From Macrostomum lignano (Eukaryota): a stretch of 28,053 nucleotides of DNA. Both the position numbers and the translations under genes were made by a program. Location: contig NIVC01001146.1 in assembly GCA_002269645.1 (NCBI GenBank), positions 1-28,053 of the forward strand. The letters are read 5' to 3'. The notes beneath the pieces are model-generated. The model searched no databases, was not told the origin of the DNA, and saw only the letters and a program-made list of their open reading frames with translations. Below, one piece after another: positions 422 through 21,980 of the stretch (positions within the stretch are counted from its first letter, which is position 1; each line of letters opens with the position of its first letter).

Positions 422-1670
422 GCAGTAGCGCTCAAGCTGCCTCCATTTTAGGCCTCCCAGCCCCGAGCATGGTTTATCCAAGCCGAGGCTCAGTTTACAC
501 GTAGGGGCGCCACGCAGGACTCGACCAAATGCTACTATCAGCTGGTCGCAGCGCTAGACCACAGTTCGCAGAACGTTTCTTGGATGTTCTTGAGGACCCC
601 CCTACTGAAAACAAGTACGCATGGCAGTTGAAGGCTTGCCTGCTTGGCACTTTCGGTTTATCGAGGCAACGCATGGCGTTGGTCTCCGCGAATTTCAAGG
701 AGCCACGATCGTATTGTACCGGCCACTGGCGTTGGTCGTCGACAAGCCTGGCACTGCTAGTCGACAAGCCCAGCCAGGGGATTGCGTTGGTTCACCAGCC
801 TGTGGTCGCGGCCGCCCGTGAGAGTCGTGTCAACCGTTTCGATAGGGGTGAGCTACCACAGGGGTGAAGCCAGCGGTCTTTGCTTTTTTCTCAAGAAGTT
901 CGGCGCGAAGGCCAGGCGATGCGAAGCCCCGTGTAGGTTTCAGGGAAACGGGGCAGGCCAGCCGTCAGTGAACAGCTCGGCGGCCGGCAGCAGCAGTCTA
1001 CTCCTTGTCCCGGATCTCTGCAGACAGGCCGGCGTTTCCGTGTTGACACCGGTGCCGAAGCCAACATCTTTCCGATCACCGCGGAGCAGCCCAAATGCAG
1101 CGCCAAGGCCCACCGCTCAACGCAGCCAACGGTTGTCAAATCCGAACTTTTGGCACCGGCCCACCAGTTCACTCTGGACCTAGGCATCCGGCGTTGCTCT
1201 TGCCTATTCATTCTGGCTGCGGTTCAGCGACCGTTGATCGGCGCGGGTTTTCTCGGCATCATGGCCTGCTATGGACCTGCCGCATCGGCGTCTGCTCAAT
1301 GCTCGCGTGCACCTGATTGACAGCACGGGCCGGGCCTGTAGCTCACCGCAGCCGCCGCTGCGGACCCGTACAGCCTTGGTCAGCGCAAGAAAGCAGCGCT
1401 ACCTGGCCTATGTGTCCGAATTCAGCACGATTGTCCAACATGTGGCAGGCAAGGACAACGCAGCAGCGGACGCGCTCTCCGTTGCACGGTGGCTTCTGTT
1501 CAGCCCCAGTTGCTCCCTGGCGTTGATTTCATGGAATGGCCAAGGCGCAGCAGGCGGATCCAACAAACCAGACCAGCAGCAGTCTCAGCTAGCGCAGGTG
1601 CGATTTGGTCCCGGGTTGGATTTGTTGTGTGACAACTCCACCGTCCGGCCGTGGCCACTCGGCCGTGGCC
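422..1670 (+). mobile_element. Decayed, internally deleted Ty3/Gypsy LTR-retrotransposon fragment (gag, protease, RNase H C-terminus); no RT or integrase core seen
   Basis: Manual translation across frameshifts. Gag N-terminus AVALKLPPF*ASQPRAWFIQAEAQF from 422 (W to TAG at 449-451), then ERFLDVLEDPPTENKYAWQLKACLLGTFGLSRQ. Gag C-terminal motif LCFFLKKFGAKARRCEAPCRFQGN. Protease RRFRVDTGAEANIFP (DTGA at 1045-1056) and AANGCQIRTFG. RNase H end QRYLAYVSEFSTIVQHVAGKDNAAADALS, then LLCDNSTVRPWPL. Confidence 0.9.
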
Positions 1671-1820
1671 AATTGTCACTTGTAATTTTTCTGACAAATG
1701 ACTTCATGAAATCCACCGCAGGTGGCAATTTTTCTAGCAATGTTTAAAACTGGGTTGTTTCATTAACTCGAAATAGTTTCACGTCGTCAACCTAAAGAGG
1801 AATCTTGTGAAGTTTTAAAG

Positions 1821-2866: not shown

Positions 2867-3115
2867 TCACTCCGAGCAATGACAGTTGTTCCTTTTGCAA
2901 CACTCGCCACCGGGTGTGCAGCCTGTGCCGCATTTGCAAGCCTTATCCGACGCAGCAGTAGCAGCAGCGTTCTTGGCTCCACCGCAGCAGCCGCCGACGC
3001 TGGTAGCGGCTTCCGACTTCGCCGAGCATCCGCAGCCGTTCTTTTTGCAGCAATCGCCACCGGGTGTGCAATTGGGGCCGCATTTGCAATTTTGGCTACA
3101 CGATTTGCAGTCCAT
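2867..3115 (-). CDS. Metallothionein-like protein, 82 aa, 18 Cys, intronless
   Basis: MDCKSCSQNCKCGPNCTPGGDCCKKNGCGCSAKSEAATSVGGCCGGAKNAAATAASDKACKCGTGCTPGGECCKRNNCHCSE*. ATG at 3115 in good context (AAGATGG). CxC/CC motifs, Lys/Gly/Ser rich, no aromatic residues. The ORF-track start at 3172 is a non-ATG codon. Confidence 0.85.
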   Translation of the reverse strand: MDCKSCSQNCKCGPNCTPGGDCCKKNGCGCSAKSEAATSVGGCCGGAKNAAATAASDKACKCGTGCTPGGECCKRNNCHCSE

Positions 3116-4920: not shown

Positions 4921-7900
4921 CTCTCTTCGATCCCTCTCTCTTCCATCTATCACCCTCTCTCCCCGATCTATCAACCTCTCTCCCTGATCTATCTCCCTCT
5001 CTCCCCGATCTCCCTCTCTCCCCGATCTATCTCCTCTCTCCCGATCTATCTCCCTCTCTCCCCGATCTATCTCCCTCTCTCCCCGATCTATCTCCCTCTC
5101 TCCCCGATCTATCTCCCTCTCTCCCCGATCTATCTCCCTCTCTCCCCGATCTATCTCCCTCTCTCCCCGATCTATCTCCCTCTCTCCCGATCTATCTCCC
5201 TCTCTCCCCGATCTATCTCCCTCTCTCCCCGATCTATCTCCCTCTCTCCGATCTATCTCCCTCTCTCCCCGATCTATCTCCCTCTCTCCCCGATCTATCT
5301 CCCTCTCTCCCCGATCTATCTCCCTCTCTCCCCGATCTATCTCCCTCTCTCGATCTATCTCCCTCTCTCCCCGATCTATCTCCCTCTCTCCCCGATCTAT
5401 CTCCCTCTCTCCCCGATCTATCTCCCCTCTCCCGATCTATCTCCCTCTCCTTCGATCTATCTCCCTCTCTCTTCGATCTATCTCCCCTCTCCCCGATCTA
5501 TCTCCCTCTCTCCCCGATCTATCTCCCTCTCTCCCCGATCTATCTCCCTCTCTCCCCGATCTATCTCCCTCTCTCCCCGATCTATCTCCCCTCTCCCCGA
5601 TCTATCTCCCTCTCTCCCCGATCTATCTCCCTCTCTCCCCGATCTATCTCCCCTCTCCCCGATCTATCTCCCTCTCCCGATCTATCTCCCCCTCTCCCCG
5701 ATCTATCTCCCCCTCTCCCCGATCTATCTCCCTCTCTCCCCGATCTATCTCCCTCTCTCCCCGATCTATCTCCCTCTCTCTTCGATCTATCTCCCTCTCT
5801 CCCCGATCTATCTCCCTCTCCCCGATCTATCTCCCTCTCTCCCGATCTATCTCCCTCTCTCCCGATCTATCTCCCTCTCTCCCCGATCTATCTCCCTCTC
5901 TCCCAATCTATCTCCCTCTCTCCCCGATCTATCTCCCTCTCTCCCCGATCTATCTCCCTCTCCCCCGATCTATCTCCCTCTCTCCCCGATCTATCTCCCT
6001 CTCTCCCCGATCTATCTCCCTCTCTCCCCGATCTATCTCCCTCTCTCCCCGATCTATCTCCCTCTCTCCCCGATCTATCTCCCTCTCTCCCCGATCTATC
6101 TCCCTCTCTCCCCGATCTATCTCCCTCTCTCCCCGATCTATCTCCCTCTCTCCCCGATCTATCTCCCTCTCTCCCCGATCTATCTCCCTCTCTCCCCGAT
6201 CTATCTCCCTCTCTCCCCGATCTATCTCCCTCTCTCCCCGATCTATCTCCCTCTCTCCCATCTATCTCCCTCTCTCCCCGATCTATCTCCCTCTCTCCCC
6301 GATCTATCTCCCTCTCTCCCCGATCTATCTCCCTCTCTCCCCCGATCTATCTCCCTCTCTCCCCGATCTATCTCCCTCTCTCCCCGATCTATCTCCCTCT
6401 CTCCCCGATCTATCTCCCTCTCTCCCCGATCTATCTCCCTCTCCCCCGATCTATCTCCCTCTCTCCCCGATCTATCTCCCTCTCTCCCCGATCTATCTCC
6501 CTCTCTCCCCGATCTATCTCCCTCTCTCCCCGATCTATCTCCCTCTCTCCCCGATCTATCTCCCTCTCTCCCCGATCTATCTCCCTCTCTCCCCGATCTA
6601 TCTCCCTCTCTCCCCGATCTATCTCCCTCTCTCCCCGATCTATCTCCCTCTCTCCCCGATCTATCTCCCTCTCCCCGATCTATCTCCCTCTCCCCCGATC
6701 TATCTCCCTCTCTCCCCGATCTATCTCCCTCTCTCCCCGATCTATCTCCCTCTCTCCCCGATCTATCTCCCTCTCTCCCCGATCTATCTCCCTCTCTCTT
6801 CGATCTATCTCCCTCTCTCCGATCTATCTCCCTCTCTCCCCGATCTATCTCCCTCTCTCCCCGATCTATCTCCCTCTCTCCGATCTATCTCCCTCTCTCC
6901 CGATCTATCTCCCTCTCTCCCCGATCTATCTCCCTCTCTCCCCGATCTATCTCCCTCTCTCCCCGATCTATCTCCCTCTCCCCGATCTATCTCCCTCTCT
7001 CCCAATCTATCTCCCTCTCTCCCCGATCTATCTCCCTCTCTCCCCGATCTATCTCCCTCTCCCCCGATCTATCTCCCTCTCTCCCCGATCTATCTCCCTC
7101 TCTCCCCGATCTATCTCCTCTCTCCCCGATCTATCTCCCTCTCTCCCCGATCTATCTCCCTCTCTCCCCGATCTATCTCCCTCTCTCCCCGATCTATCTA
7201 TCTCCCTCCTCTCCCCGATCTATCTCCCTCTCTCCCCGATCTATCTCTCTCTCCCCGATCTATCTCCCTCTCTCCCCGATCTATCTCCCCTCTCCCGATC
7301 TATCTCCCTCTCTCCGATCTATCTCCCTCTCCCCCGATCTATCTCCCTCTCTCCCCGATTTATCTCCCTCTCTCTTCGATCTATCTCCCTCTCTCCCCGA
7401 TCTATCTCCCTCTCTCCCCGATCTATCTCCCTCTCCCCCGATCTATCTCCCTCTCTCCCCAATCTATCTCCCTCTCTCCCCGATCTATCTCCCTCTCTCC
7501 GATCTATCTCCCTCTCCCCGATCTATCTCCCTCTCCCCGATTTATCTCCCTCTCTCTTCGATCTATCTCCCTCTCTCCCCGATCTATCTCCCTCTCTCCC
7601 CGATCTATCTCCCTCTCTCTCGATCTATCTCCCTCTCTCCCCAATCTATCTCCCTCTCTCCCCGATCTATCTCCCTCTCTCCCCGATCTATCTCCCTCTC
7701 TCCCCGATCTATCTCCCTCTCCCCCGATCTATCTCCCTCTCTCCCCAATCTATCTCCCTCTCTCCCCAATCTATCTCCCTCTCTCCCCGATCTATCTCCC
7801 TCTCTCCCCGATCTATCTCCCTCTCCCCCGATCTATCTCCCTCTCTCCCCGATCTATCTCCCTCTCTCCCCGATCTATCTCCCTCTCTCCCCGATCTATC

Positions 7901-10900
7901 TCCCTCTCTCCCCGATCTATCTCCCTCTCTCCCCGATCTATCTCCCTCTCTCCCCGATCTATCTCCCTCTCTCCCCAATCTATCTCCCTCTCTCCCCGAT
8001 CTATCTCCCTCTCTCCCCGATCTATCTCCCTCTCTCCCCGATCTATCTCCCTCTCTCCCCGATCTATCTCCCTCTCTCCCCGATCTATCTCCCTCTCTCC
8101 CCCATCTATCTCCCTCTCTCCCCGATCTATCTCCCTCTCTCCCCGATCTATCTCCCTCTCTCCCCGATCTATCTCCCTCTCTCCCCCATCTATCTCCTCT
8201 CTCTCGATCTATCTCCCTCTCTCCCCGATCTATCTCCCTCTCTCCCCGATCTATCTCCCTCTCTCCCCGATCTATCTCCCTCTCTCCCCAATCTATCTCC
8301 CTCTCTCCCCGATCTATCTCCCTCTCTCCCCGATCTATCTCCCTCTCCCCCGATCTATCTCCCTCTCTCCCCGATCTATCTCCCTCTCTCTTCGATCTAT
8401 CTCCCTCTCTCCCCGATCTATCTCCCTCTCTCCCCGATCTATCTCCCTCTCTCTTCGATCTATCTCCCTCTCTCCCCAATCTATCTCCCTCTCTCCCGAT
8501 CTATCTCCCTCTCTCCCCGATCTATCTCCCTCTCTCCCCGATCTATCTCCCTCTCTCCCGATCTATCTCCCTCTCTCCCCGATCTATCTCCCTCTCTCTT
8601 CGATCTATCTCCCCCTCTCCCCGATCTATCTCCCTCTCTCCCCGATCTATCTCTCTCTCTCCCCGATCTATCTCCCTCTCTCCCCGATCTATCTCCCCCT
8701 CTCCCCGATCTATCTCCCTCTCTCCCCGATCTATCTCCCTCTCCCCGATCTATCTCCCTCTCTCCCCGATCTATCTCCCTCTCTCTTCGATCTATCTCCC
8801 TCTCTCCCCGATCTATCTCCCTCTCTCCCCGATCTATCTCCTCTCTCTTCGATCTATCTCCCTCTCTCCCCAATCTATCTCCCTCTCTCCCCGATCTATC
8901 TCCCTCTCTCCCAATCTATCTCCCTCTCTCCCCGATCTATCTCCCTCTCTCCCCGATCTATCTCCCTCTCTCCCCGATCTATCTCCCTCTCTCCCCGATT
9001 TATCTCCCTCTCTCTTCGATCTATCTCCCTCTCTCCCCGATCTATCTCCCTCTCTCCCCGATCTATCTCCCTCTCTCTTCGATCTATCTCCCTCTCTCCC
9101 CAATCTATCTCCCTCTCTCCCCGATCTATCTCCCTCTCTCCCCGATCTATCTCCCTCTCCCCCGATCTATCTCCCTCTCTCCCCGATCTATCTCCCTCTC
9201 TCCCGATCTATCTCCCTCTCTCTTCGATCTATCTCCCCTCTCCCCGATCTATCTCCCTCTCTCCCCGATCTATCTCTCTCTCCCCGATCTATCTCCCTCT
9301 CTCCCCGATCTATCTCCCCTCTCCCCGATCTATCTCCCTCTCTCCCCGATCTATCTCCCTCTCCCCGATCTATCTCCCTCTCTCCCCGATCTATCTCCCT
9401 CTCTCCCGATCTATCTCCCTCTCTCCCCGATCTATCTCCCTCTCTCCCCGATCTATCTCCCTCTCCCCCGATCTATCTCCCTCTCTCCCCAATCTATCTC
9501 CCTCTCTCCCGATCTATCTCCCTCTCTCCCCGATCTATCTCCCTCTCCCCGATCTATCTCCCTCTCTCCCGATCTATCTCCCTCTCTCCCCGATCTATCT
9601 CCCTCTCTCTTCGATCTATCCCTCTCCCCGATCTATCTCCCTCTCTCCCCGATCTATCTCCCCCTCTCCCCGATCTATCTCCCCCTCTCCCCGATCTATC
9701 TCCCTCTCTCCCTGATCTATCTCCCTCTCTCCCCGATCTATCTCCCTCTCTCCCCGATCTATCTCCCTCTCCCCCGATCTATCTCCCTCTCTCCCCAATC
9801 TATCTCCCTCTCTCCCCAATCTATCTCCCTCTCTCCCGATCTATCTCCCTCTCTCCCCGATCTATCTCCCTCTCTCCCCGATCTATCTCCCTCTCTCCCC
9901 GATCTATCTCCCTCTCTCCCCGATCTATCTCCCTCTCTCGCCGATCTATCTCCCTCTCTCCCCGATCTATCTCCCTCTCTCCCCGATCTATCTCCCTCTC
10001 TCCCCGATCTATCTCCCTCTCTCCCCAATCTATCTCCCTCTCCCCCGATCTATCTCCCTCTCTCCCCGATTTATCTCCCTCTCTCTTCGATCTATCTCCC
10101 TCTCTCCCCGATCTATCTCCCTCTCTCCACGATCTATCTCCCTCTCTCTTCGATCTATCTCCCTCTCTCCCAATCTATCTCCTCTCTCCCCGATCTATCT
10201 CCCTCTCTCCCCGATCTATCTCCCTCTCTCCCCGATCTATCTCCCTCTCTCCCCGATCTATCTCCCTCTCTCCCCGATCTATCTCCCTCTCTCTTCGATC
10301 TATCTCCCCCTCTCCCCGATCTATCTCCCTCTCTCCCCGATCTATCTCTCTCTCCCCGATCTATCTCCCTCTCTCCCCGATCTATCTCCCCCTCTCCCCG
10401 ATCTATCTCCCTCTCTCCCCGATCTATCTCCCTCTCCCCCGATCTATCTCCCTCTCTCCCCGATCTATCTCCCTCTCTCTTCGATCTATCTCCCTCTCTC
10501 CCCGATCTATCTCCCTCTCTCCCCGATCTATCTCCCTCTCTCTTCGATCTATCTCCCTCTCTCCCCAATCTATCTCCCTCTCTCCCGATCTATCTCCCTC
10601 TCTCCCCAATCTATCTCCCTCTCTCCCCGATCTATCTCCCTCTCTCCCCGATCTATCTCCCTCTCCCCCGATCTACCTCCCTCTCTCCCCGATTTATCTC
10701 CCTCTCTCTTCGATCTATCTCCCTCTCTCCCCGATCTATCTCCCTCTCTCCCCGATCTATCTCCCTCTCTCCCCGATCTATCTCCCTCTCTCCCCAATCT
10801 ATCTCCCTCTCTCCCCGATCTATCTCCCTCTCTCCCCGATCTATCTCCCTCTCCCCCGATCTATCTCCCTCTCTCCCCGATCTATCTCCCTCTCTCCCCC

Positions 10901-12439
10901 ATCTATCTCCCTCTCTCTTCGATCTATCTCCCCCTCTCCCCGATCTATCTCTCTTTCTCCCCGATCTATCTCTCTCTCTCCCCGATCTATCTCCCTCTCT
11001 CCCCGATCTATCTCCCCCTCTCCCCGATCTAACTCCCTCTCTCCCCGATCTATCTCCCTCTCTCTTCGATCTATCTCCCCCTCTCCCGATCTATCTCCCT
11101 CTCTCCCCGATCTATCTCCTCTCTCCCCGATCTATCTCCCTCTCTCCCCGATCTATCTCCCCTCTCCCCGATCTATCTCCCTCTCTCCCCGATCTATCTC
11201 CCTCTCCCCCGATCTATCTCCCTCTCCCCCGATCTATCTCCCTCTCCCCGATCTATCTCCCTCTCTCCCCGATCTATCTCCCTCTCTCCGATTATCTCCC
11301 TCTCTCTTCGATCTATCTCCCTCTCTCCCCGATCTATCTCCCTCTCTCCCCGATCTATCTCCCTCTCTCTTCGATCTATCTCCCTCTCTCCCCAATCTAT
11401 CTCCCTCTCTCCCCGATCTATCTCCCTCTCTCCCCGATCTATCTCCCTCTCTCCCCGATCTATCTCCCTCTCTCCCCGATCTATCTCCCTCTCTCCCCGA
11501 TCTATCTCCCTCTCTCTTCGATCTATCTCCCTCTCTCCCGATCTATCTCCCTCTCTCCCCGATCTATCTCTCTCTCTCCCGATCTATCTCCTCTCTCCCG
11601 ATCTATCTCCCCTCTCCCCGATCTATCTCCCTCTCTCCCCGATCTATCTCCCTCTCCCCCGATCTATCTCCCTCTCTCCCCGATCTATCTCCCTCTCTCT
11701 TCGATCTATCTCCCTCTCTCCCCGATCTATCTCCCTCTCTCCCCGATCTATCTCCCTCTCTCTTCGATCTATCTCCCTCTCTCCCCAATCTATCTCCCTC
11801 TCTCCCCGATCTATCTCCCTCTCTCCCCAATCTATCTCCCTCTCTCCCCGATCTATCTCCCTCTCTCCCCGATCTATCTCCCTCTCTCCCCGATCTATCT
11901 CCCTCTCTCCCCGATTTATCTCCCTCTCTCTTCGATCTATCTCCCTCTCTCCCCGATCTATCTCCCTCTCTCCCCGATCTATCTCCCTCTCTCCCCGATC
12001 TATCTCCCTCTCTCCCCAATCTATCTCCCTCTCTCCCCGATCTATCTCCCTCTCTCCCCGATCTATCTCCCTCTCCCCCGATCTATCTCCCTCTCTCCCC
12101 GATCTATCTCCCTCTCTCCCCCATCTATCTCCCTCTCTCTTCGATCTATCTCCCCCTCTCCCCGATCTATCTCTCTCTCTCCCCGATCTATCTCTCTCTC
12201 TCCCCGATCTATCTCCCTCTCTCCCCGATCTATCTCCCCCTCTCCCCGATCTATCTCCCTCTCTCCCCGATCTATCTCCCTCTCCCCCGATCTATCTCCC
12301 TCTCTCCCCGATCTATCTCCCTCTCTCTTCGATCTATCTCCCTCTCTCTTCGATCTATCTCCCTCTCTCCCCGATCTATCTCCCTCTCTCTTCGATCTAT
12401 CTCCCTCTCTCTTCAATCTATCTCCCTCTCTCTCCGATC
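4921..12439. repeat. 7.5-kb polypyrimidine satellite, 21-bp unit GATCTATCTCCCTCTCTCCCC, roughly 360 copies
   Basis: Read directly; frequent 1-2 nt indels plus recurring variants (CTTCGAT, CCCAAT, GATTT). Source of all GEREIDR / GREGDRS ORFs. Confidence 0.98.
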
Positions 12440-14442: not shown

Positions 14443-15914
14443 ACTCAGGTGACAGACATCCTGTACTCAGATACTCAGGTGTGATTGCAGACATCCTGCA
14501 CTCATACTCAGGTGTGATTGCAGACATCCTGCACTCAGATGCTCAGGTGTGATTGCAGACATCCTGCACTCAGATACTCAGGTGTGATTGCAGACATCCT
14601 GCTCTCGGAGACTCAGGTGTGATTGCAGACATCCTGCACTCTGATACTCAGGTGGGATTGATTGCAGACATCCTGCACTCAGATGCTCAGGTGTGATTGC
14701 AGACATCCTGTACTCAGATACTCAGGTGTGATTGCAGACATCCTGCACTCAGATGCTCAGGTGTGATTGCAGACATCCTGCACTCTGATACTCAGGTGTG
14801 ATTGCAGACATCCTGCTCTCGGAGACTCAGGTGTGATTGCAGACATCCTGCACTCTGATACTCAGGTGGGATTGATTGCATACATCCTGCACTCAGATGC
14901 TCAGGTGTGATTGCAGACATCCTGTACTCAGATACTCAGGTGTGATTGCAGACATCCTGCACTCTGATACTCAGGTGTGATTGATTGCAGACATCCTGCA
15001 CTCAGATACTCAGGTGTGATTGATTTCAGACATCCTGCACTCAGATACTCAGGTGTGATTGCAGACATACTGCACTCAGATACTCAGGTGTGATTGATTG
15101 CAGACATCCTGCACTCTGATACTCAGGTGTGATTTCAGACATCCTGCACTCTGATACTCAGGTGTGATTTCAGACATCCTGCACTCTGATACTCAGGTGT
15201 GATTTCAGACATCCTGCACTCAGATACTCAGGTGTGATTGCAGACATCCTGCACTCAGATACTCAGGTGTGATTGATTGCAGACATCCTGCACTCAGATA
15301 CTCAGGTGGGATTGCAGACATCCTGCACTCAGATACTCAGGTGGGATTGCAGACATCCTGCACTCAGATGCTCAGGTGTGATTGCAGACATCCTGCACTC
15401 AGATACTCAGGTGTGATTTCAGACATCCTGCACTCAGATACTCAGGTGTGATTTCAGACATCCTGCACTCTGATACTCAGGTGTGATTGCAGACATCCTG
15501 CACTCAGATACTCAGGTGTGATTGCAGACATCCTGCACTCAGATACTCAGGTGTGATTGATTGCAGACATCCTGCACTCAGATACTCAGGTGTGATTGAT
15601 TGCAGACATCCTGCACTCTGATACTCAGGTGTGATTGCAGACATCCTGCACTCAGATGCTCAGGTGTGATTGATTGCAGACATCCTGCACTCAGATACTC
15701 AGGTGGGATTGCAGACATCCTGCACTCAGATACTCAGGTGGGATTGCAGACATCCTGCACTCAGATGCTCAGGTGTGATTGATTGCAGACATCCTGCACT
15801 CAGATACTCAGGTGGGATTGCAGACATCCTGCACTCAGATACTCAGGTGGGATTGCAGACATCCTGCACTCTGATACTCAGGTGTGATTGCAGACATCTC
15901 GCACTCAGATGCTC
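14443..15914. repeat. 35-bp (variant 39-bp) minisatellite GCAGACATCCTGCACTCAGATACTCAGGTGTGATT, about 41 copies
   Basis: Read directly; the 39-bp variant carries an extra GATT. Confidence 0.97.
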
Positions 15915-16137
15915 ATTTTTAGCTGAAATGACATACAACACCTCAAATTAGCCGTGATAAGGACTTTAGTTGCGCAAACCATCCCATATTAGTATATTTG
16001 CTACAGTTTTAGAACTTTTTTCCAGTTGTCAGGCGTACTGAACTTTCAACCGTCTGATAACACCGAAATTGTGACAAACAGAACGTCTTCTAAGTTCAGC
16101 TGCACTTCAGCTACTTGAAGACTCCTTCGTTTGTAAT

Positions 16138-16607
16138 TTAGTACATAGAAGGCTCTTCCTGAACAATAGCTGATCGCTTGCCGAATCTGGCGTAGCCGCG
16201 CTTCCCGAATCTGGTGTAGCCGCGCTTCCCGAATCTGGCGTAGCCGCGCTTCCCGAATCTGGCGTAGCCGCGCTTCCCGAATCTGGCGTAGCCGCGCTTC
16301 CCGAATCTGGCGTAGCCGCGCTTCCCGAATCTGGTGTAGCCGCGCTTCCCGAATCTGGCGTAGCCGCGCTTCCCGAATCTGACGTAGCCGCGCTTCCCGA
16401 ATCTGACGTAGCCGCGCTTCCCGAATCTGGTGTAGCCGCGCTTCCCGAATCTGGTGTAGCCGCGCTTCCCGAATCTGGTGTAGCCGCGCTTCCCGAATCT
16501 GGCGTAGCCGCGCTTATCCAACGTGTCAAAGTCTCTTAGCAAACGCGTTTGTACGACGTCGCTATCTGCCAAAGAAAAAGTTCCATAGCTGTTGACATTT
16601 GGCTGCA
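16138..16607 (-). CDS. FMRFamide-like (GYxRFamide) neuropeptide precursor, last coding exon: 14 copies of GY[A/T/V]RF-G-KR
   Basis: After ...DTLDKR there are 7 GYARF, 5 GYTRF and 2 GYVRF, each followed by GKR (amidation Gly plus dibasic cleavage). Phase-1 acceptor GTCTGTAG ending at 16608 joins in frame to the signal exon. TAA at 16138-16140. Confidence 0.95.
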
Positions 16608-16733
16608 CTACAGACAGCGACTGCGACTAAGGAAAGCAAAGCAATAACCCTAACCCCATCCCTTAGCATAAACAAAAAACAAAAAACTAAAACCGAGTAC
16701 CAAACAATTCATGTGGGTAATAAAAAGTGTCAC

Positions 16734-16812
16734 CTGTATCTTCTTGCGCAAGCGACGGCGCGCTGAAGAACGCAATCAGCACCGCGGCCAGCAGGCCCCA
16801 CAGAAAGTTCAT
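16734..16812 (-). CDS. Signal-peptide exon of the GYxRFamide precursor (MNFLWGLLAAVLIAFFSAPSLA-QEDT); spliced product 182 aa
   Basis: ATG at 16812, hydrophobic core and S-L-A cleavage motif. Phase-1 donor AG/GTGACA at 16733. The 126-nt intron (16608-16733) gives 79+470=549 nt in frame. An alternative phase-1 donor (GTACTC) further on cannot be excluded. Confidence 0.85.
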
Positions 16813-16903
16813 CGTAGCCTTTGTACTTCAGTGGCTAGCAGCTGAGTTGAAACGGTCTGAATTGGCTGCTCTGCTATCTAATGTTAAAGTGGATTCAAAT
16901 AGA

Positions 16904-17407
<504 letters not shown>

Positions 17408-17439
17408 AGTTTATATTATAAATGGGAGAATAAACTTAC

Positions 17440-17546
17440 CTGAGAGGCAACGTGTCGTGCTGAGACAGCGCAGATCTCTGAGGCATTCAGCTCCGAATCC
17501 CTTTATCCCGTTGCAGCTCGACCCTCCTCCATCCCCAGCAGCCAAT
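17440..17546 (-). promoter_or_regulatory. Candidate promoter and short non-coding first exon of the neuropeptide gene
   Basis: Minus-strand consensus donor CAG/GTAAGT (intron starts 17439), TATA-like GATAAA at 17502-17507, CCAAT at 17542-17546. Possible acceptor TTTCAACTCAG at 16842 upstream of the ATG. TSS not determinable. Confidence 0.5.
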
Positions 17547-17706
17547 GGTTACTGTGTGGCGCCCCCATCCCTGTTGAATTGAAAATTTTAAGTGAGGCAA
17601 ATATCGCCTCAGTCAATTGAACTCAACCGTACAAAAGGCTTTTGAAAGTCATCGTCAAATAAATTAGCAAATTGCTTTTGATAGTCATTATTAGCCAGGC
17701 CATTTG

Positions 17707-17727
17707 CAGACAGACAGACAGACAGAC

Positions 17728-17786
<59 letters not shown>

Positions 17787-17796
17787 CGACACAGAC

Positions 17797-17872
<76 letters not shown>
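17707..17872. repeat. (AGAC)n microsatellite between the two divergent genes
   Basis: Read directly. Confidence 0.98.
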
Positions 17873-18342
17873 CCTTAGTCCCTCGTCCCTCCCCTGTCTC
17901 GCTGGTGTCCCGCAGTTCCCTAACGGGAGCGGAAAGCCTGGTAACTTGTCGATAAGAAGGCAAGATATGAGAATATCTCCAGCTAACCAATGTTGCCATA
18001 TCAGACGCTTTGATTGTTGGGAATATTGTGCAGCCTTGGCTGGGATATCAGCAGTGAGAGAGAGAATGCGGAGTCCAAATCTTATCGCTAGCCATAGGTA
18101 TGAATATTCAGAGAAATCAGTGCGCAGTGACTCTGATTGGCAATAAAAACCCGCACCGAGTGGAAATATTGCAAAATCGTGCTGCATAAAATTCTCATGC
18201 GCACTGGCTTCGGTAACCTGTTCCTCACTAGCCGAGACTATATCAGTTTTATCTGCTCAAGTATATTTCCTAGAAAGCTATCTCGGTTAGGACTGGTAAT
18301 TCACTGTCATCATTATTATTACGAACTCAATAGTGGATCAAT

Positions 18343-18395
18343 ATGTGGAACAGCTGGATCTGTCCGACTGATAGACAGCTGCGACTGAGATCCAA
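18343..18395 (+). CDS. RPH3A-like: Rabphilin/Noc2-like Rab effector, coding exon 1 (MWNSWICPTDRQLRLRS-K)
   Basis: Resembles the WVCPxDRQLxLRxKL N-terminal motif of Noc2/rabphilin as I recall it. ATG at 18343 with in-frame TAG upstream at 18331-18333. Phase-2 donor AA/GTAAGT at 18396. Confidence 0.85.
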
Positions 18396-18509
18396 GTAAG
18401 TGGATTTGTGCTGTTCAATTTGTTTTACTGGAATGTCCTGCTGAATGTTTGTATCCTTGATGTATTGATGAGGGTTTGTGTCTTCAGGGTGTCACTTGTG
18501 ACTATCAAG

Positions 18510-18830
18510 TGTGTGTGTCTAACATGTGTGTGTCTAACATGTGTGTGTCTAACAATTTTTGGTTGTGTCTAACATGTGTGTGTGTCTAACAGGTTTGTGT
18601 GTGTCTAACAGGTTTGTGTGTGTCTAACAGGTTTGTGTGTGTCTAACAGGTTTGTGTGTGTCTAACAGGTTTGTGTGTGTGTGTCTAACGGGTGTGTGAG
18701 TGTGTGTCTAACAGGTGTGTGAGTGTGTGTCTAACAGGTGTGTGAGTGTGTGTCTAACGGGTGTGTGAGTGTGTGTCTAACAGGTGTGTGAGTGTGTGTC
18801 TAACAGGTGTGTGAGTGTTAAACAGGTGTG
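18510..18830. repeat. GT-rich about 20-22-bp minisatellite (GTGTGTGTCTAACAGGT...) in rabphilin intron 1
   Basis: Read directly. Confidence 0.92.
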
Positions 18831-18936
18831 GGAAATTTTATTATCAAGTTGGCTAGCCTGAAAACTCAGCCTGGCCAGTGAAAGCACTCGGGGCATCCAC
18901 AGAGCTCAATTATGTCAACGCACCCTCCTTGCTCAG

Positions 18937-19062
18937 ACTGTCCAAGGGCTGGTGCAACATCTACCAGCATCGACCGACTTTTACAACCGAGGAGTTGCAA
19001 TTAATGGACAGGGTGATGCGGGACAATGAGGCACTGCAAGCTATGGAGAGAAACAGGATTCG
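18937..19062 (+). CDS. RPH3A-like: Rabphilin/Noc2-like exon 2, Rab-binding helix (LSKGWCNIYQHRPTFTTEELQLMDRVMRDNEALQAMERNRI-R)
   Basis: Acceptor CCTCCTTGCTCAG, phase 2 in and phase 2 out (CG/GTGAGA), 126 nt. Fits the SHD1 pattern L..GW...EE...I..V..R.E.L...E..RI. Confidence 0.88.
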
Positions 19063-19328
19063 GTGAGAGAGAAGTCGATTGCAACACTGCGATGTGGATT
19101 CTTTGTTCCTACCGACACAGTGCCTTTGTAGACTTGGGAGTGGCTGCGGCTTCAGTGTTGTTGCGGCTTTGGGGGTGACAGAGTGTTAGCGCGATTCAGC
19201 TGATATGCGACCCCTGCCGCATTGTGCCTTTGCACTGCTCAGCTGCCCTATGCTGCTCTGCAGTGCCGTTGCCAGGATCCTGGCTGCTGCATCTCTCACT
19301 AATCTCCCTGCCCTTTTGATTTTCATCG

Positions 19329-19641
19329 CCTCTCCTCTCCTCTCGTCTCCTCTCCTCTCCTCTCCTCTCCTCTCCTCTCCTCTCGTCTCCTCTCCTCTCC
19401 TCTCGTCTCCTCTCCTCTCCTCTCCTCTCCTCTCCTCTCCTCTCCTCTCCTCTCCTCTCCTCTCCTCTCCTCTCCTCTCCTCTCCTCTCCTCTCCTCTCC
19501 TCTCCTCTCCTCTCGTCTCCTCTCTTCTCCTCTCCTCTCCTCTCCTCTCCTCTCCTCTCCTCTCCTCTCCTCTCCTCTCCTCTCCTCTCCTCTCCTCTCC
19601 TCTCCTCTCCTCTCCTCTCCTCTTCTCTCCTCTCCTCTCCT
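19329..19641. repeat. (TCTCC)n microsatellite in rabphilin intron 2
   Basis: Read directly. Confidence 0.98.
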
Positions 19642-20842
19642 CAGTACTCCCCTCTCTCCCCTGTCTCTACACACTCTCTTTTTTTCCTCTCTTCTATCCT
19701 GCTCTCCTTACTCTTCACTGATCCCTAGCTAGTATGTTGTGCTCACCTGTCAATAAACTACTCATTGTTTTCAATTTTGTCAGATTTTTTATTTTAACTA
19801 TTCGCTCACAGTCGCCCTGGCAACAAAGTCAGTCTACTTAGCTAGCATTTTCTCAATGAACCGTGGCCTCTGCCGGAATCTACGAGTACTCTACTCTCTT
19901 CTCCATTTCCCAGCGCCAGCAAGCACTGAATCCTACTTTGTCCATCAGTCAATTACTTAAAGCTTTTGTCCCGCACCCTTAAAACGGCGATTGTGTCCTT
20001 CTAAGCTAATTGGAGTTTTGCTCGGTTGACTAGTTTGAGTAAATTGTGACTCCCCTGATGGGCCCGAGCTCGAAGCCTGCTAAAAGCCTTAAAAGTACCG
20101 ACCATTGTCGCCATAAAATGTCAAGCAATTCAAAGCCATGAAGAGAAATTGCTTTTCTCTGTTGAGCTTTCCCGCGGTTCAAGAGGACTGGAAGAGGCCG
20201 GGGCATCCACCCCACGTAGCTTACAATATTACTCATAATCTTATATGCATTTAGCCAATGTCGTATGACCATTGCCATCTAGCTATCTTCTAGTTTGCTT
20301 GTCCTAGTGTGTGAGTGTCTTGAATGTCTTAGTCACTCAGTGTCTTTAGAGTCTTATAGTCTTAATGTCTTACGATTACTATTCTTTATAGATTAATATT
20401 TCCGGTGACCTCTAGTAAAAACTCAGTCTAAAGCTACACACTAAACAAAAAGTAAAGAGTTTTTCTTAAAGACCACCTTGATAAGTTTTTTTGGCTTATT
20501 TTCTCCTTCTCCTTGTTCTCCTTCCATCCTCTCCGTTTGTCTTCTTTCACTTCCTTTCCCCTTTTCCTCTTCGTAGCCATGGGGCACCATTTTTGCTATT
20601 GGCGCTTGACCACTCTAATGGTGAGTTGCATATAATGAATAACAAAAGTTGTTGGCGCTGGTCTATCTATAGTACGAGACGACTTACAAGACCCACCTGG
20701 ATTGGTCGCGTAGTTGTGAATTGATTCGCAAACCTCATCGTCGGTATTAATCCGCACACACACGGCCCTGGCTCAGTCCCTACGCTTTCGTGTTTTAGTG
20801 TCTGACTGTCTGTCTGAGCGTTTTATTGCCATCAAGTCTTCC

Positions 20843-21282
20843 AGTCATAGTGTCAGTCAAAGTGTCGGTTATAGTGTCGGTGATGGTGTCGATGATTGTG
20901 TCGGTTATTGTGTCGGTCATAGTGTCGGTTATAGTTTCGGTGATAGTGTCGATGATAGTGTCGGTTATAGTGTCGATGATAGTGTCGGTTATTGTGTCGG
21001 TAAAAGTGTCTGTGATAGTGTCAATCATAATGTCGGTCATAGTGTCGGTCATTGTGTCGAATATATCGTAGGTCTTAGTGTCAGTGATACGCTCGTAGTG
21101 TCAATTATAGTGTCGGTTATTGTGTCGATTATAGTATCGGTCATAGTGTCGGTGAAAGTTTTGGATATAGTAACGGTGATACTGTCAGTCATTGTGTTGG
21201 TCATAGTATCGGTCATAGTGTCGGTTATAGTGTGGGTCAAAGAGTCGGTCATAGTTTCGGTCATAGTGGCTGTCATAATGTC
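20843..21282. repeat. Degenerate 12-bp minisatellite (ATAGTGTCGGTY), about 36 copies, rabphilin intron 2
   Basis: Read directly; source of the VIVS / TDTI ORFs. Confidence 0.92.
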
Positions 21283-21319
21283 AGTCTCTCAGACTCGAAC
21301 CCCAATCCCACCGCCTCAG

Positions 21320-21473
21320 GCACTACATCTCAAAGCTGGAGTCGCTGAAGTCGCTGGCCCGAGGAGACGGTCACAGCCGCTGCCTGCTGTGCGGTGACCG
21401 AGTGTCAGACTCGCTACTGATGCGGCTGCTGCCGAAGGTTCACCGCCGACTGCGGTGCTGCGTCTGCGGTCTG
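21320..21473 (+). CDS. RPH3A-like: Rabphilin/Noc2-like exon 3, start of FYVE-type zinc finger (HYISKLESLKSLARGDGHSRCLLCGDRVSDSLLMRLLPKVHRRLRCCVCGL)
   Basis: Acceptor CCGCCTCAG, phase 2 in, phase 0 out with donor CTG/GTGAGT, 154 nt. The GDG..RCLLCG motif is typical of the family. Confidence 0.92.
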
Positions 21474-21980
21474 GTGAGTCGGATGCTTGATCAGTTTCAG
21501 GCTGAGCTCAGACGAACCACCTCAGTTGCCCTGGTTGAACCTAAAAAAATGTCTTAAGCTAAAGTGCAGTCGCAGATTCACGCTGACTCAAATATGAAGG
21601 CTCAATAAGGTAGTTGCTACATTCTCAGCTCGGCTAGAGCAGTATTGAAAACAATTATTTGCTACAAAATGCCTTTGTGTGCCTTTTTTTTCCAATTTTC
21701 ACATCTAAGCGACACATTTCTTATCTTTGCGCACTTTCGAATAGCTTTTTTAGCAAAATTGTGCGTTCATTACACCGCACCGCAGAAGACACTCCAGACA
21801 GGCAAAGATCTCAGAGTGCAGAGTCTTTTCTTTGCGAATGTTTACATGCCGGAGGGGCGCCAACGAAGCGCTTAAATGACGACTCGAAGGCAGCATCAAA
21901 GGACAAACTGATGTCGACAAAAAGTCATGCCAATTTGAGGGCCTTCAGAACACGCTTTGGGAAGCGTTATACCTCCTCCA

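Follow-up and report, generated by a model that had tools for sequence, protein, structure and literature searches.

On the minus strand of the window, by which we mean the whole 28,053-nt stretch of Macrostomum lignano DNA analyzed here, lies a locus that we read, with a probability of about 0.9, as a three-exon gene encoding a 168-residue preproneuropeptide for FMRFamide-like peptides (FLPs). The predicted precursor consists of a 22-residue signal peptide, a 21-residue acidic spacer, 112 residues of peptide units, a KR pair, and an 11-residue acidic tail. The coding sequence of 507 nt contained neither stops nor frameshifts and had canonical splice sites. A preliminary description of this DNA had proposed a signal peptide, an acidic/polar spacer, and 14 amidated pentapeptides flanked by KR, and this layout was borne out by the ORF, by Tandem Repeats Finder (TRF), and by reading the frame across the splice junctions. 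The same description had called the precursor architecture complete; the coding layout held, but a 5'UTR exon ending at 21327 and the 4501-nt first intron had been missed. The coordinates of the gene are collected in Table 1.

Table 1. Parts of the predicted FLP precursor gene, listed from 5' to 3' along the minus strand
Feature	Position in the window	Strand	Basis
Exon 1, non-coding 5'UTR	21327..21500 (5' end at least 21500)	-	Join to 16825; paralogue model A0A1I8F9H7 similar up to about 21500
Intron 1, 4501 nt, GT...AG	16826..21326	-	Splice join and TRF
Exon 2: 13 nt of 5'UTR, signal peptide, QEDT, first base of the next codon	16734..16825	-	
Signal peptide MNFLWGLLAAVLIAFFSAPSLA	16812..16747	-	Hydrophobic core and small residues at -3/-1
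Intron 2, 168 nt, phase 1, GT 16733/16732, AG 16567/16566	16566..16733	-	A0A1I8JRL5 junction AQEDT/DSDVVQ
Exon 3 overall	16565 to stop 16140..16138	-	Spacer, 14 units, tail
Start of exon 3: rest of acidic spacer DSDVVQTRLLRDFDTLD	16516..16565	-	Identical in A0A1I8JRL5
14 tandem 24-nt units, each KR-GY[A/T/V]RF-G	16515..16180	-	Codon-register reading and TRF
Final KR, C-terminal SAIVQEEPSMY, TAA stop at 16140..16138	16138..16179	-	C-terminus matches A0A1I8JRL5 and A0A1I8F9H7
Probable 3'UTR	15993..16137	-	AATATA at 15998..15993, the only polyadenylation-signal-like hexamer found downstream; weak

The minus-strand ORF at 16138..16608 reads through DKRGYARFGKRGYTRFG into 14 KRGY[A/T/V]RFG units, followed by KR and SAIVQEEPSMY before the stop; in its translation, LRDFDTLD stands directly N-terminal to the block of KRGYxRFG units. 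TRF placed a 24-bp repeat of 14.2 copies at 16175..16515, the copies matching at 97%. Along the minus strand the units succeed one another in the order A T T T V V A T A A A A T A, and each is encoded by AAG CGC GGC TAC xxx AGA TTC GGG; xxx stands for GCC in the seven Ala units, for ACC in the five Thr units, and for GTC in the two Val units. Tyr, Arg, Phe, and the Gly amide donor were conserved in 14/14 units, and the position of Ile was taken in every unit by Ala, Thr, or Val, which confirmed the earlier statement that Ile is absent. Only the first two positions of the X codon varied among the units, apart from the Gly codon of the last unit, where GGC replaces GGG; in the KR that follows, Arg CGA replaces CGC, and both changes are synonymous. 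It is at this same X codon that the known flatworm FLPs vary. The 24-nt units are nearly identical, which suggests recent tandem duplication or homogenization. Judged by the criterion for FLP/FaRP precursors, that is, repeated Arg-Phe peptides with a Gly amide donor and dibasic borders, the sequence contained 14 such units of the form KR-GYxRF-G-KR. The predicted products per precursor are seven GYARFamides, five GYTRFamides, and two GYVRFamides, with calculated [M+H]+ values of 612.325, 642.336, and 640.357, respectively.

The ATG at 16812..16810 starts MNFLWGLLAAVLIAFFSAPSLAQEDT, and because 79 nt of coding sequence precede the GT donor at 16733, intron 2 is in phase 1. In the signal peptide, the 14-residue core formed by residues 3-16 had a mean Kyte-Doolittle value of 2.6, and a reading of MNFLWGLLAAVLIAFFSAPSLA/QEDT placed Ser at -3 and Ala at -1 before Gln23, in keeping with a predicted signal peptide. 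The identical signal peptide is present in two UniProt entries from M. lignano, A0A1I8JRL5 and A0A1I8IXZ7. The donor GT of exon 1 was located at 21326/21325, 4.5 kb upstream of exon 2, and joining 21327 to 16825 yielded FSDSSFEITKATMNFLWG, which is exactly the N-terminal part of A0A1I8JRL5.

Intron 1 consists largely of tandem arrays, namely (TATC)126, (CAGA)42, GT-rich units of 15-23 bp, (CCTCT)63, and a 12-bp array; (TATC)126, at 16904..17407, starts only about 80 nt from exon 2, and the 12-bp array ends about 40 nt from exon 1. On the other side of the gene, 14453..15915 is occupied by a 35-bp satellite, present in about 41 copies and organized in a higher-order period of 109 bp; it starts about 220 nt downstream of the stop and may be part of the 3'UTR of the peptide gene or follow it closely. 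Farther away, a 7.5-kb array at 4931..12439 comprises about 363 copies of the 21-bp unit TCCCTCTCTCCCCGATCTATC and has a GC skew of about -0.84, an extreme strand asymmetry. An intronless minus-strand ORF at 2867..3115 encodes 82 residues from an ATG, 20 of them cysteines, with two internal repeats of the pattern C-K-C-G-x-x-C-T-P-G-G-[DE]-C-C-K-[KR]-N-x-C-x-C-S; it looks metallothionein-like, and searches of Pfam and of PDB sequences gave no match. The plus-strand ORF at 1271..1747 contains VQHVAGKDNAAADALS, which we take to be a motif of the LTR-retroelement pol type, and is probably a retroelement remnant; it had no Pfam match. A single in-frame NLRAFRTRFGKRY at 21926..21970 lies on the plus strand, divergent from the peptide gene and about 450 nt upstream of exon 1. 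We rejected its lone RFGKR (21953..21967) as a second peptide gene, as it is one unit with no upstream in-frame ATG or signal peptide; by a rough estimate, about 0.1 motifs of the RFGKR type are expected by chance in the six frames of 28 kb, and this one is probably due to chance, though curious beside an RFamide gene. A search of Rfam found nothing in the window.

The best database match of the precursor was A0A1I8JRL5, an M. lignano protein named 'FMRFamide-related neuropeptides' (E=2.3e-45; E=8.8e-56 in the full HMMER search). A frame-slip-tolerant alignment with the three-exon splice product gave identity at 183/191 residues, at the cost of 11 indel or frame-slip steps. A0A1I8JRL5 begins with 26 residues before Met, which are followed by the signal peptide and by the junction AQEDT/DSDVVQTRLLRDFDTLDKR. 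Its residues ...FSDSSFE(I) map to about 21349..21327 on the minus strand, after which comes GT, and (I)TKATM maps directly 5' of the ATG, preceded by AG. The two agreed fully in 5'UTR exon, signal peptide, spacer, and tail, and their 14 A/T/V units followed one another in the same order, whereas the repeat region of A0A1I8JRL5 is read in all three frames (GYVRSGSAATSDSGSARLRQIREARLHQIRE..., SGSAATSDSGS..., ARLRQIRE...) and that of the window in one uninterrupted frame. The entry therefore displays only seven Y[A/T]RFG motifs (3 YARFG and 4 YTRFG) for 14 units, and no YVRFG. From the identity with frame slips and the shared unit order, A0A1I8JRL5 is, as judged by sequence comparison, a model of the same locus built from an error-prone assembly rich in indels, and the clean sequence is the one in the window; an exact look-up of A0A1I8JRL5 found no contig carrying its sequence. 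Since the model extends across a splice into the 5'UTR exon instead of starting at Met, it may have been built on a transcript. The earlier call of a flatworm FMRFamide-like prepropeptide agrees with the name of this best match, and relatives of the precursor are annotated as FLP precursors, but A0A1I8JRL5 represents the same locus and its name was assigned automatically.

A second acceptor AG, ending at 16608, also keeps the frame open and would give a 126-nt intron. The preliminary description had placed the intron at 16608-16733; its donor at 16733 and its phase 1 stand, but the acceptor does not agree with the sole public model of the locus, which uses 16566. If the coding intron of the same gene ended at 16608, or if both acceptors were used as alternatives, 14 residues, VQPNVNSYGTFSLA, would be added to the spacer and the 14 peptides would be unchanged. 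The 20 nt upstream of the two acceptors were similar in pyrimidine content (12/20 versus 13/20), but an unbroken CTTTTTCTTT run precedes 16566. We consider the use of 16608 as the main acceptor, or of both as alternatives, unlikely; it may serve as a minor or alternative site. Because the junction of A0A1I8JRL5 lies at 16566, the 14 residues that had been counted as part of the spacer are probably intronic.

The open frame across the array is no evidence by itself, because five of the six frames are open anyway: a reading of the 24-nt unit found no stops in 3/3 minus-strand and 2/3 plus-strand frames, and three of these five frames were also seen open directly in translations of the window. 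This openness, together with the abundance of tandem arrays in the window (28 TRF rows, some of which are overlapping descriptions of one array), would suit a non-coding 24-bp minisatellite whose neuropeptide-like translation is an accident. Such an accident is nevertheless highly improbable. In a six-frame scan of the window, at least three dibasic-X-Gly-dibasic units in one stretch occurred only in the array at 16180..16515, and 14 of the 15 RFG[KR][KR] motifs of the window fell in it. The unit length is a multiple of 3, with variation limited to one codon; the array joins a signal-peptide exon in frame via a canonical GT-AG intron; and existing gene models match the locus together with its spacer, tail, and UTR. 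Peptide grammar, the in-frame join to the signal-peptide exon, and the existing gene models go beyond chance, and on these grounds a chance ORF in a minisatellite was rejected.

Two further entries showed that the preproneuropeptide gene has relatives in the same species. A0A1I8F9H7 has the spacer and the ...EEPSMY end in common with the window and differs by 32 frame slips and by substitutions. A0A1I8IXZ7, an 'RNase H domain-containing protein', contains about 20 units, nearly all GYARF, and after GKRSAI runs on into a non-LTR retrotransposon ORF; because that ORF follows directly, the entry is modelled as a single 789-residue protein, and its name hides the neuropeptide part. By their sequences these entries are related but different copies, and since they do not represent the locus in the window, the gene is multi-copy in the M. 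lignano genome. Copies with different numbers and types of units are present, and GYARFamide appears to be the predominant predicted product across them. The genome of M. lignano was duplicated recently, and several copies would be in line with this. The copy in the window could be a silent or decaying duplicate, not expressed despite its intact frame, and the existence of at least two others, one of them fused in its model to the retrotransposon ORF, and of satellites and a retroelement remnant around the locus is in line with this. However, the uninterrupted coding sequence with its canonical splice sites, the spliced 5'UTR exon in the public model of this very locus, and the synonymous nature of the differences at the array edge make a silent copy improbable, though less so than an accidental minisatellite translation.

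Run against 1.84 billion representative proteins, a full HMMER search with the precursor returned 355 matches at E<=0.001. Among the 121 of these that were inspected, GY[A/T]RF units were found only in M. lignano entries, and no orthologue from another species was found in the protein searches, including the full HMMER scan; a word-index protein search with a shortened precursor gave no candidates. Many of the remaining matches were unrelated low-complexity proteins. The other matches with repeated RF-Gly-dibasic units, where identifiable, were all named or evident RFamide precursors. They included a YMRFamide precursor of Lineus longissimus (XP_064635473.1, 'FMRF-amide neuropeptides-like', P0074), an unnamed precursor with NYIRF and TSYIRF units (P0141), two with xxDYVRF units from an ENA marine metagenome assembly (P0003, whose contig is from Tara Oceans, and P0004), and several with APMRF units. 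In the Lineus precursor, as in that of the window, a signal peptide precedes numerous RF-Gly units bordered by basic cleavage sites, but acidic spacers separate most of the Lineus units, whereas the 14 units of the window precursor are packed directly together. This packing bears on the Pfam FARP family (PF01581), with which the full precursor gave no match even at E<=10 and a three-unit construct scored 9.9 bits against a gathering cut-off of 15.5, while the control precursors P0003, P0074 (72.9 bits), and P0141 passed. The 11-position model expects an N-terminal extension, which is absent from back-to-back 8-residue units; the score below the cut-off is a formal matter of membership in this Pfam family and not evidence against function.

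GYIRFamide, YIRFamide, and RYIRFamide are flatworm FLPs isolated from triclad turbellarians, and YMRFamide is likewise cited as a flatworm FLP (PMC2919380). The window peptides are one residue away from GYIRFamide, with which they share the pentapeptide length, Gly1-Tyr2, and the Arg-Phe-amide end; where the three triclad peptides have Ile, they have Ala, Thr, or Val, and a C-terminal Tyr-Ile-Arg-Phe-NH2, the mark of the flatworm YIRFamide type, was found in none of the 14 units. In M. lignano itself, YMRFamide from the propeptide Mlig001796.g3 is the RFamide tested in PMC9234716. Compared by name only, it belongs to the same peptide class of the same species and has the same Tyr-x-Arg-Phe-amide ending, but it derives from a separate gene and, as named there, carries Met at -3 and no N-terminal Gly (PMC9234716). 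The Schmidtea mediterranea prohormone spp-11, of the YIRFamide type and validated by peptidomics (PMC2953531), is by its description also a flatworm prohormone for Y-x-RFamide peptides, but its peptides have Ile where those of the window carry A/T/V.

If the precursor read from the sequence follows the established neuropeptide pathway, the signal peptide would be removed in the ER by cleavage after Ala22, and a prohormone convertase would cleave after each Lys-Arg. The basic residues would then be trimmed by a carboxypeptidase, and peptidylglycine alpha-amidating enzymes would turn the C-terminal Gly into the amide, giving 7 GYARF-NH2, 5 GYTRF-NH2, and 2 GYVRF-NH2 per precursor. The PC2 homologue of M. 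lignano is expressed in the nervous system, and its knock-down is lethal in juveniles (PMC4490696). GYIRFamide and YIRFamide are potent excitants of flatworm muscle that act via a GPCR, PKC, and voltage-operated Ca2+ currents (PMC2919380). By analogy with these two, the window peptides would be released from neurons and might excite muscle by way of a GPCR on the muscle as their target, with a PKC-dependent rise in Ca2+ entry through voltage-operated channels leading to contraction.

An anti-GYIRFamide serum stains a well-described set of neurons in M. lignano (PMC2717932, PMC4490696). Since the window peptides are only one internal residue away from the immunogen, they are an obvious candidate for the antigen in these 'GYIRFamidergic' neurons; the GYIRFamide-immunoreactive neurons are compatible with expression of the window gene and not specific to it. 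To our knowledge, position -3 of known flatworm FLPs is Ile or Met and never Ala, Thr, or Val. Day and colleagues (1997) are reported to have seen much lower potency of YIRFamide on schistosome muscle when its Ile was exchanged for a small residue. In view of Ala, Thr, or Val at -3 and of this loss of potency, myoexcitation by the window peptides is not to be assumed, and the M. lignano receptor may have different ligand requirements. We put forward, tentatively and with some doubt, that the 'GYIRFamidergic' system in fact uses GYARF-, GYTRF-, and GYVRF-amide as its endogenous peptides; their small residue at -3 would reflect a receptor with a ligand pocket that diverged early in flatworm evolution, or else the three variants would act on different receptors.

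The preliminary description had treated the Ala, Thr, and Val variants as unfamiliar. Neither GY[A/T/V]RFamide nor Y[A/T/V]RFamide occurred in the open literature searched, outside which the catalogue of McVeigh et al. 2009 lies, and the supplements of PMC9234716 and PMC6188537 contained no GYxRF sequences. Novelty thus holds for the peptides as far as that literature goes, but the gene is already in UniProt in frameshifted form, and YMRFamide is already known in flatworms and in M. lignano. In kind, the gene is a classical multi-copy FMRFamide-like precursor, the peptide complement of which is garbled in the public entry, and its description is an incremental addition rather than a new principle.

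The principal excitatory neuromuscular peptides of flatworms belong to the FMRFamide-like class, and in parasitic species the receptors for these peptides have come under discussion as drug targets. M. lignano is a flatworm in which transgenesis works, and a clean gene structure with exact peptides is therefore of practical use. The window sequence corrects three garbled database entries and enables probes, knock-downs, reporter lines, and synthetic ligands for receptor deorphanization, and it suggests the real target of the widely used anti-GYIRFamide serum in M. lignano. If the peptides with Ala, Thr, or Val at -3 were indeed the endogenous ligands of the 'GYIRFamidergic' system, M. lignano, as a transgenic model, would offer a natural experiment in the co-evolution of FLP ligands and receptors.
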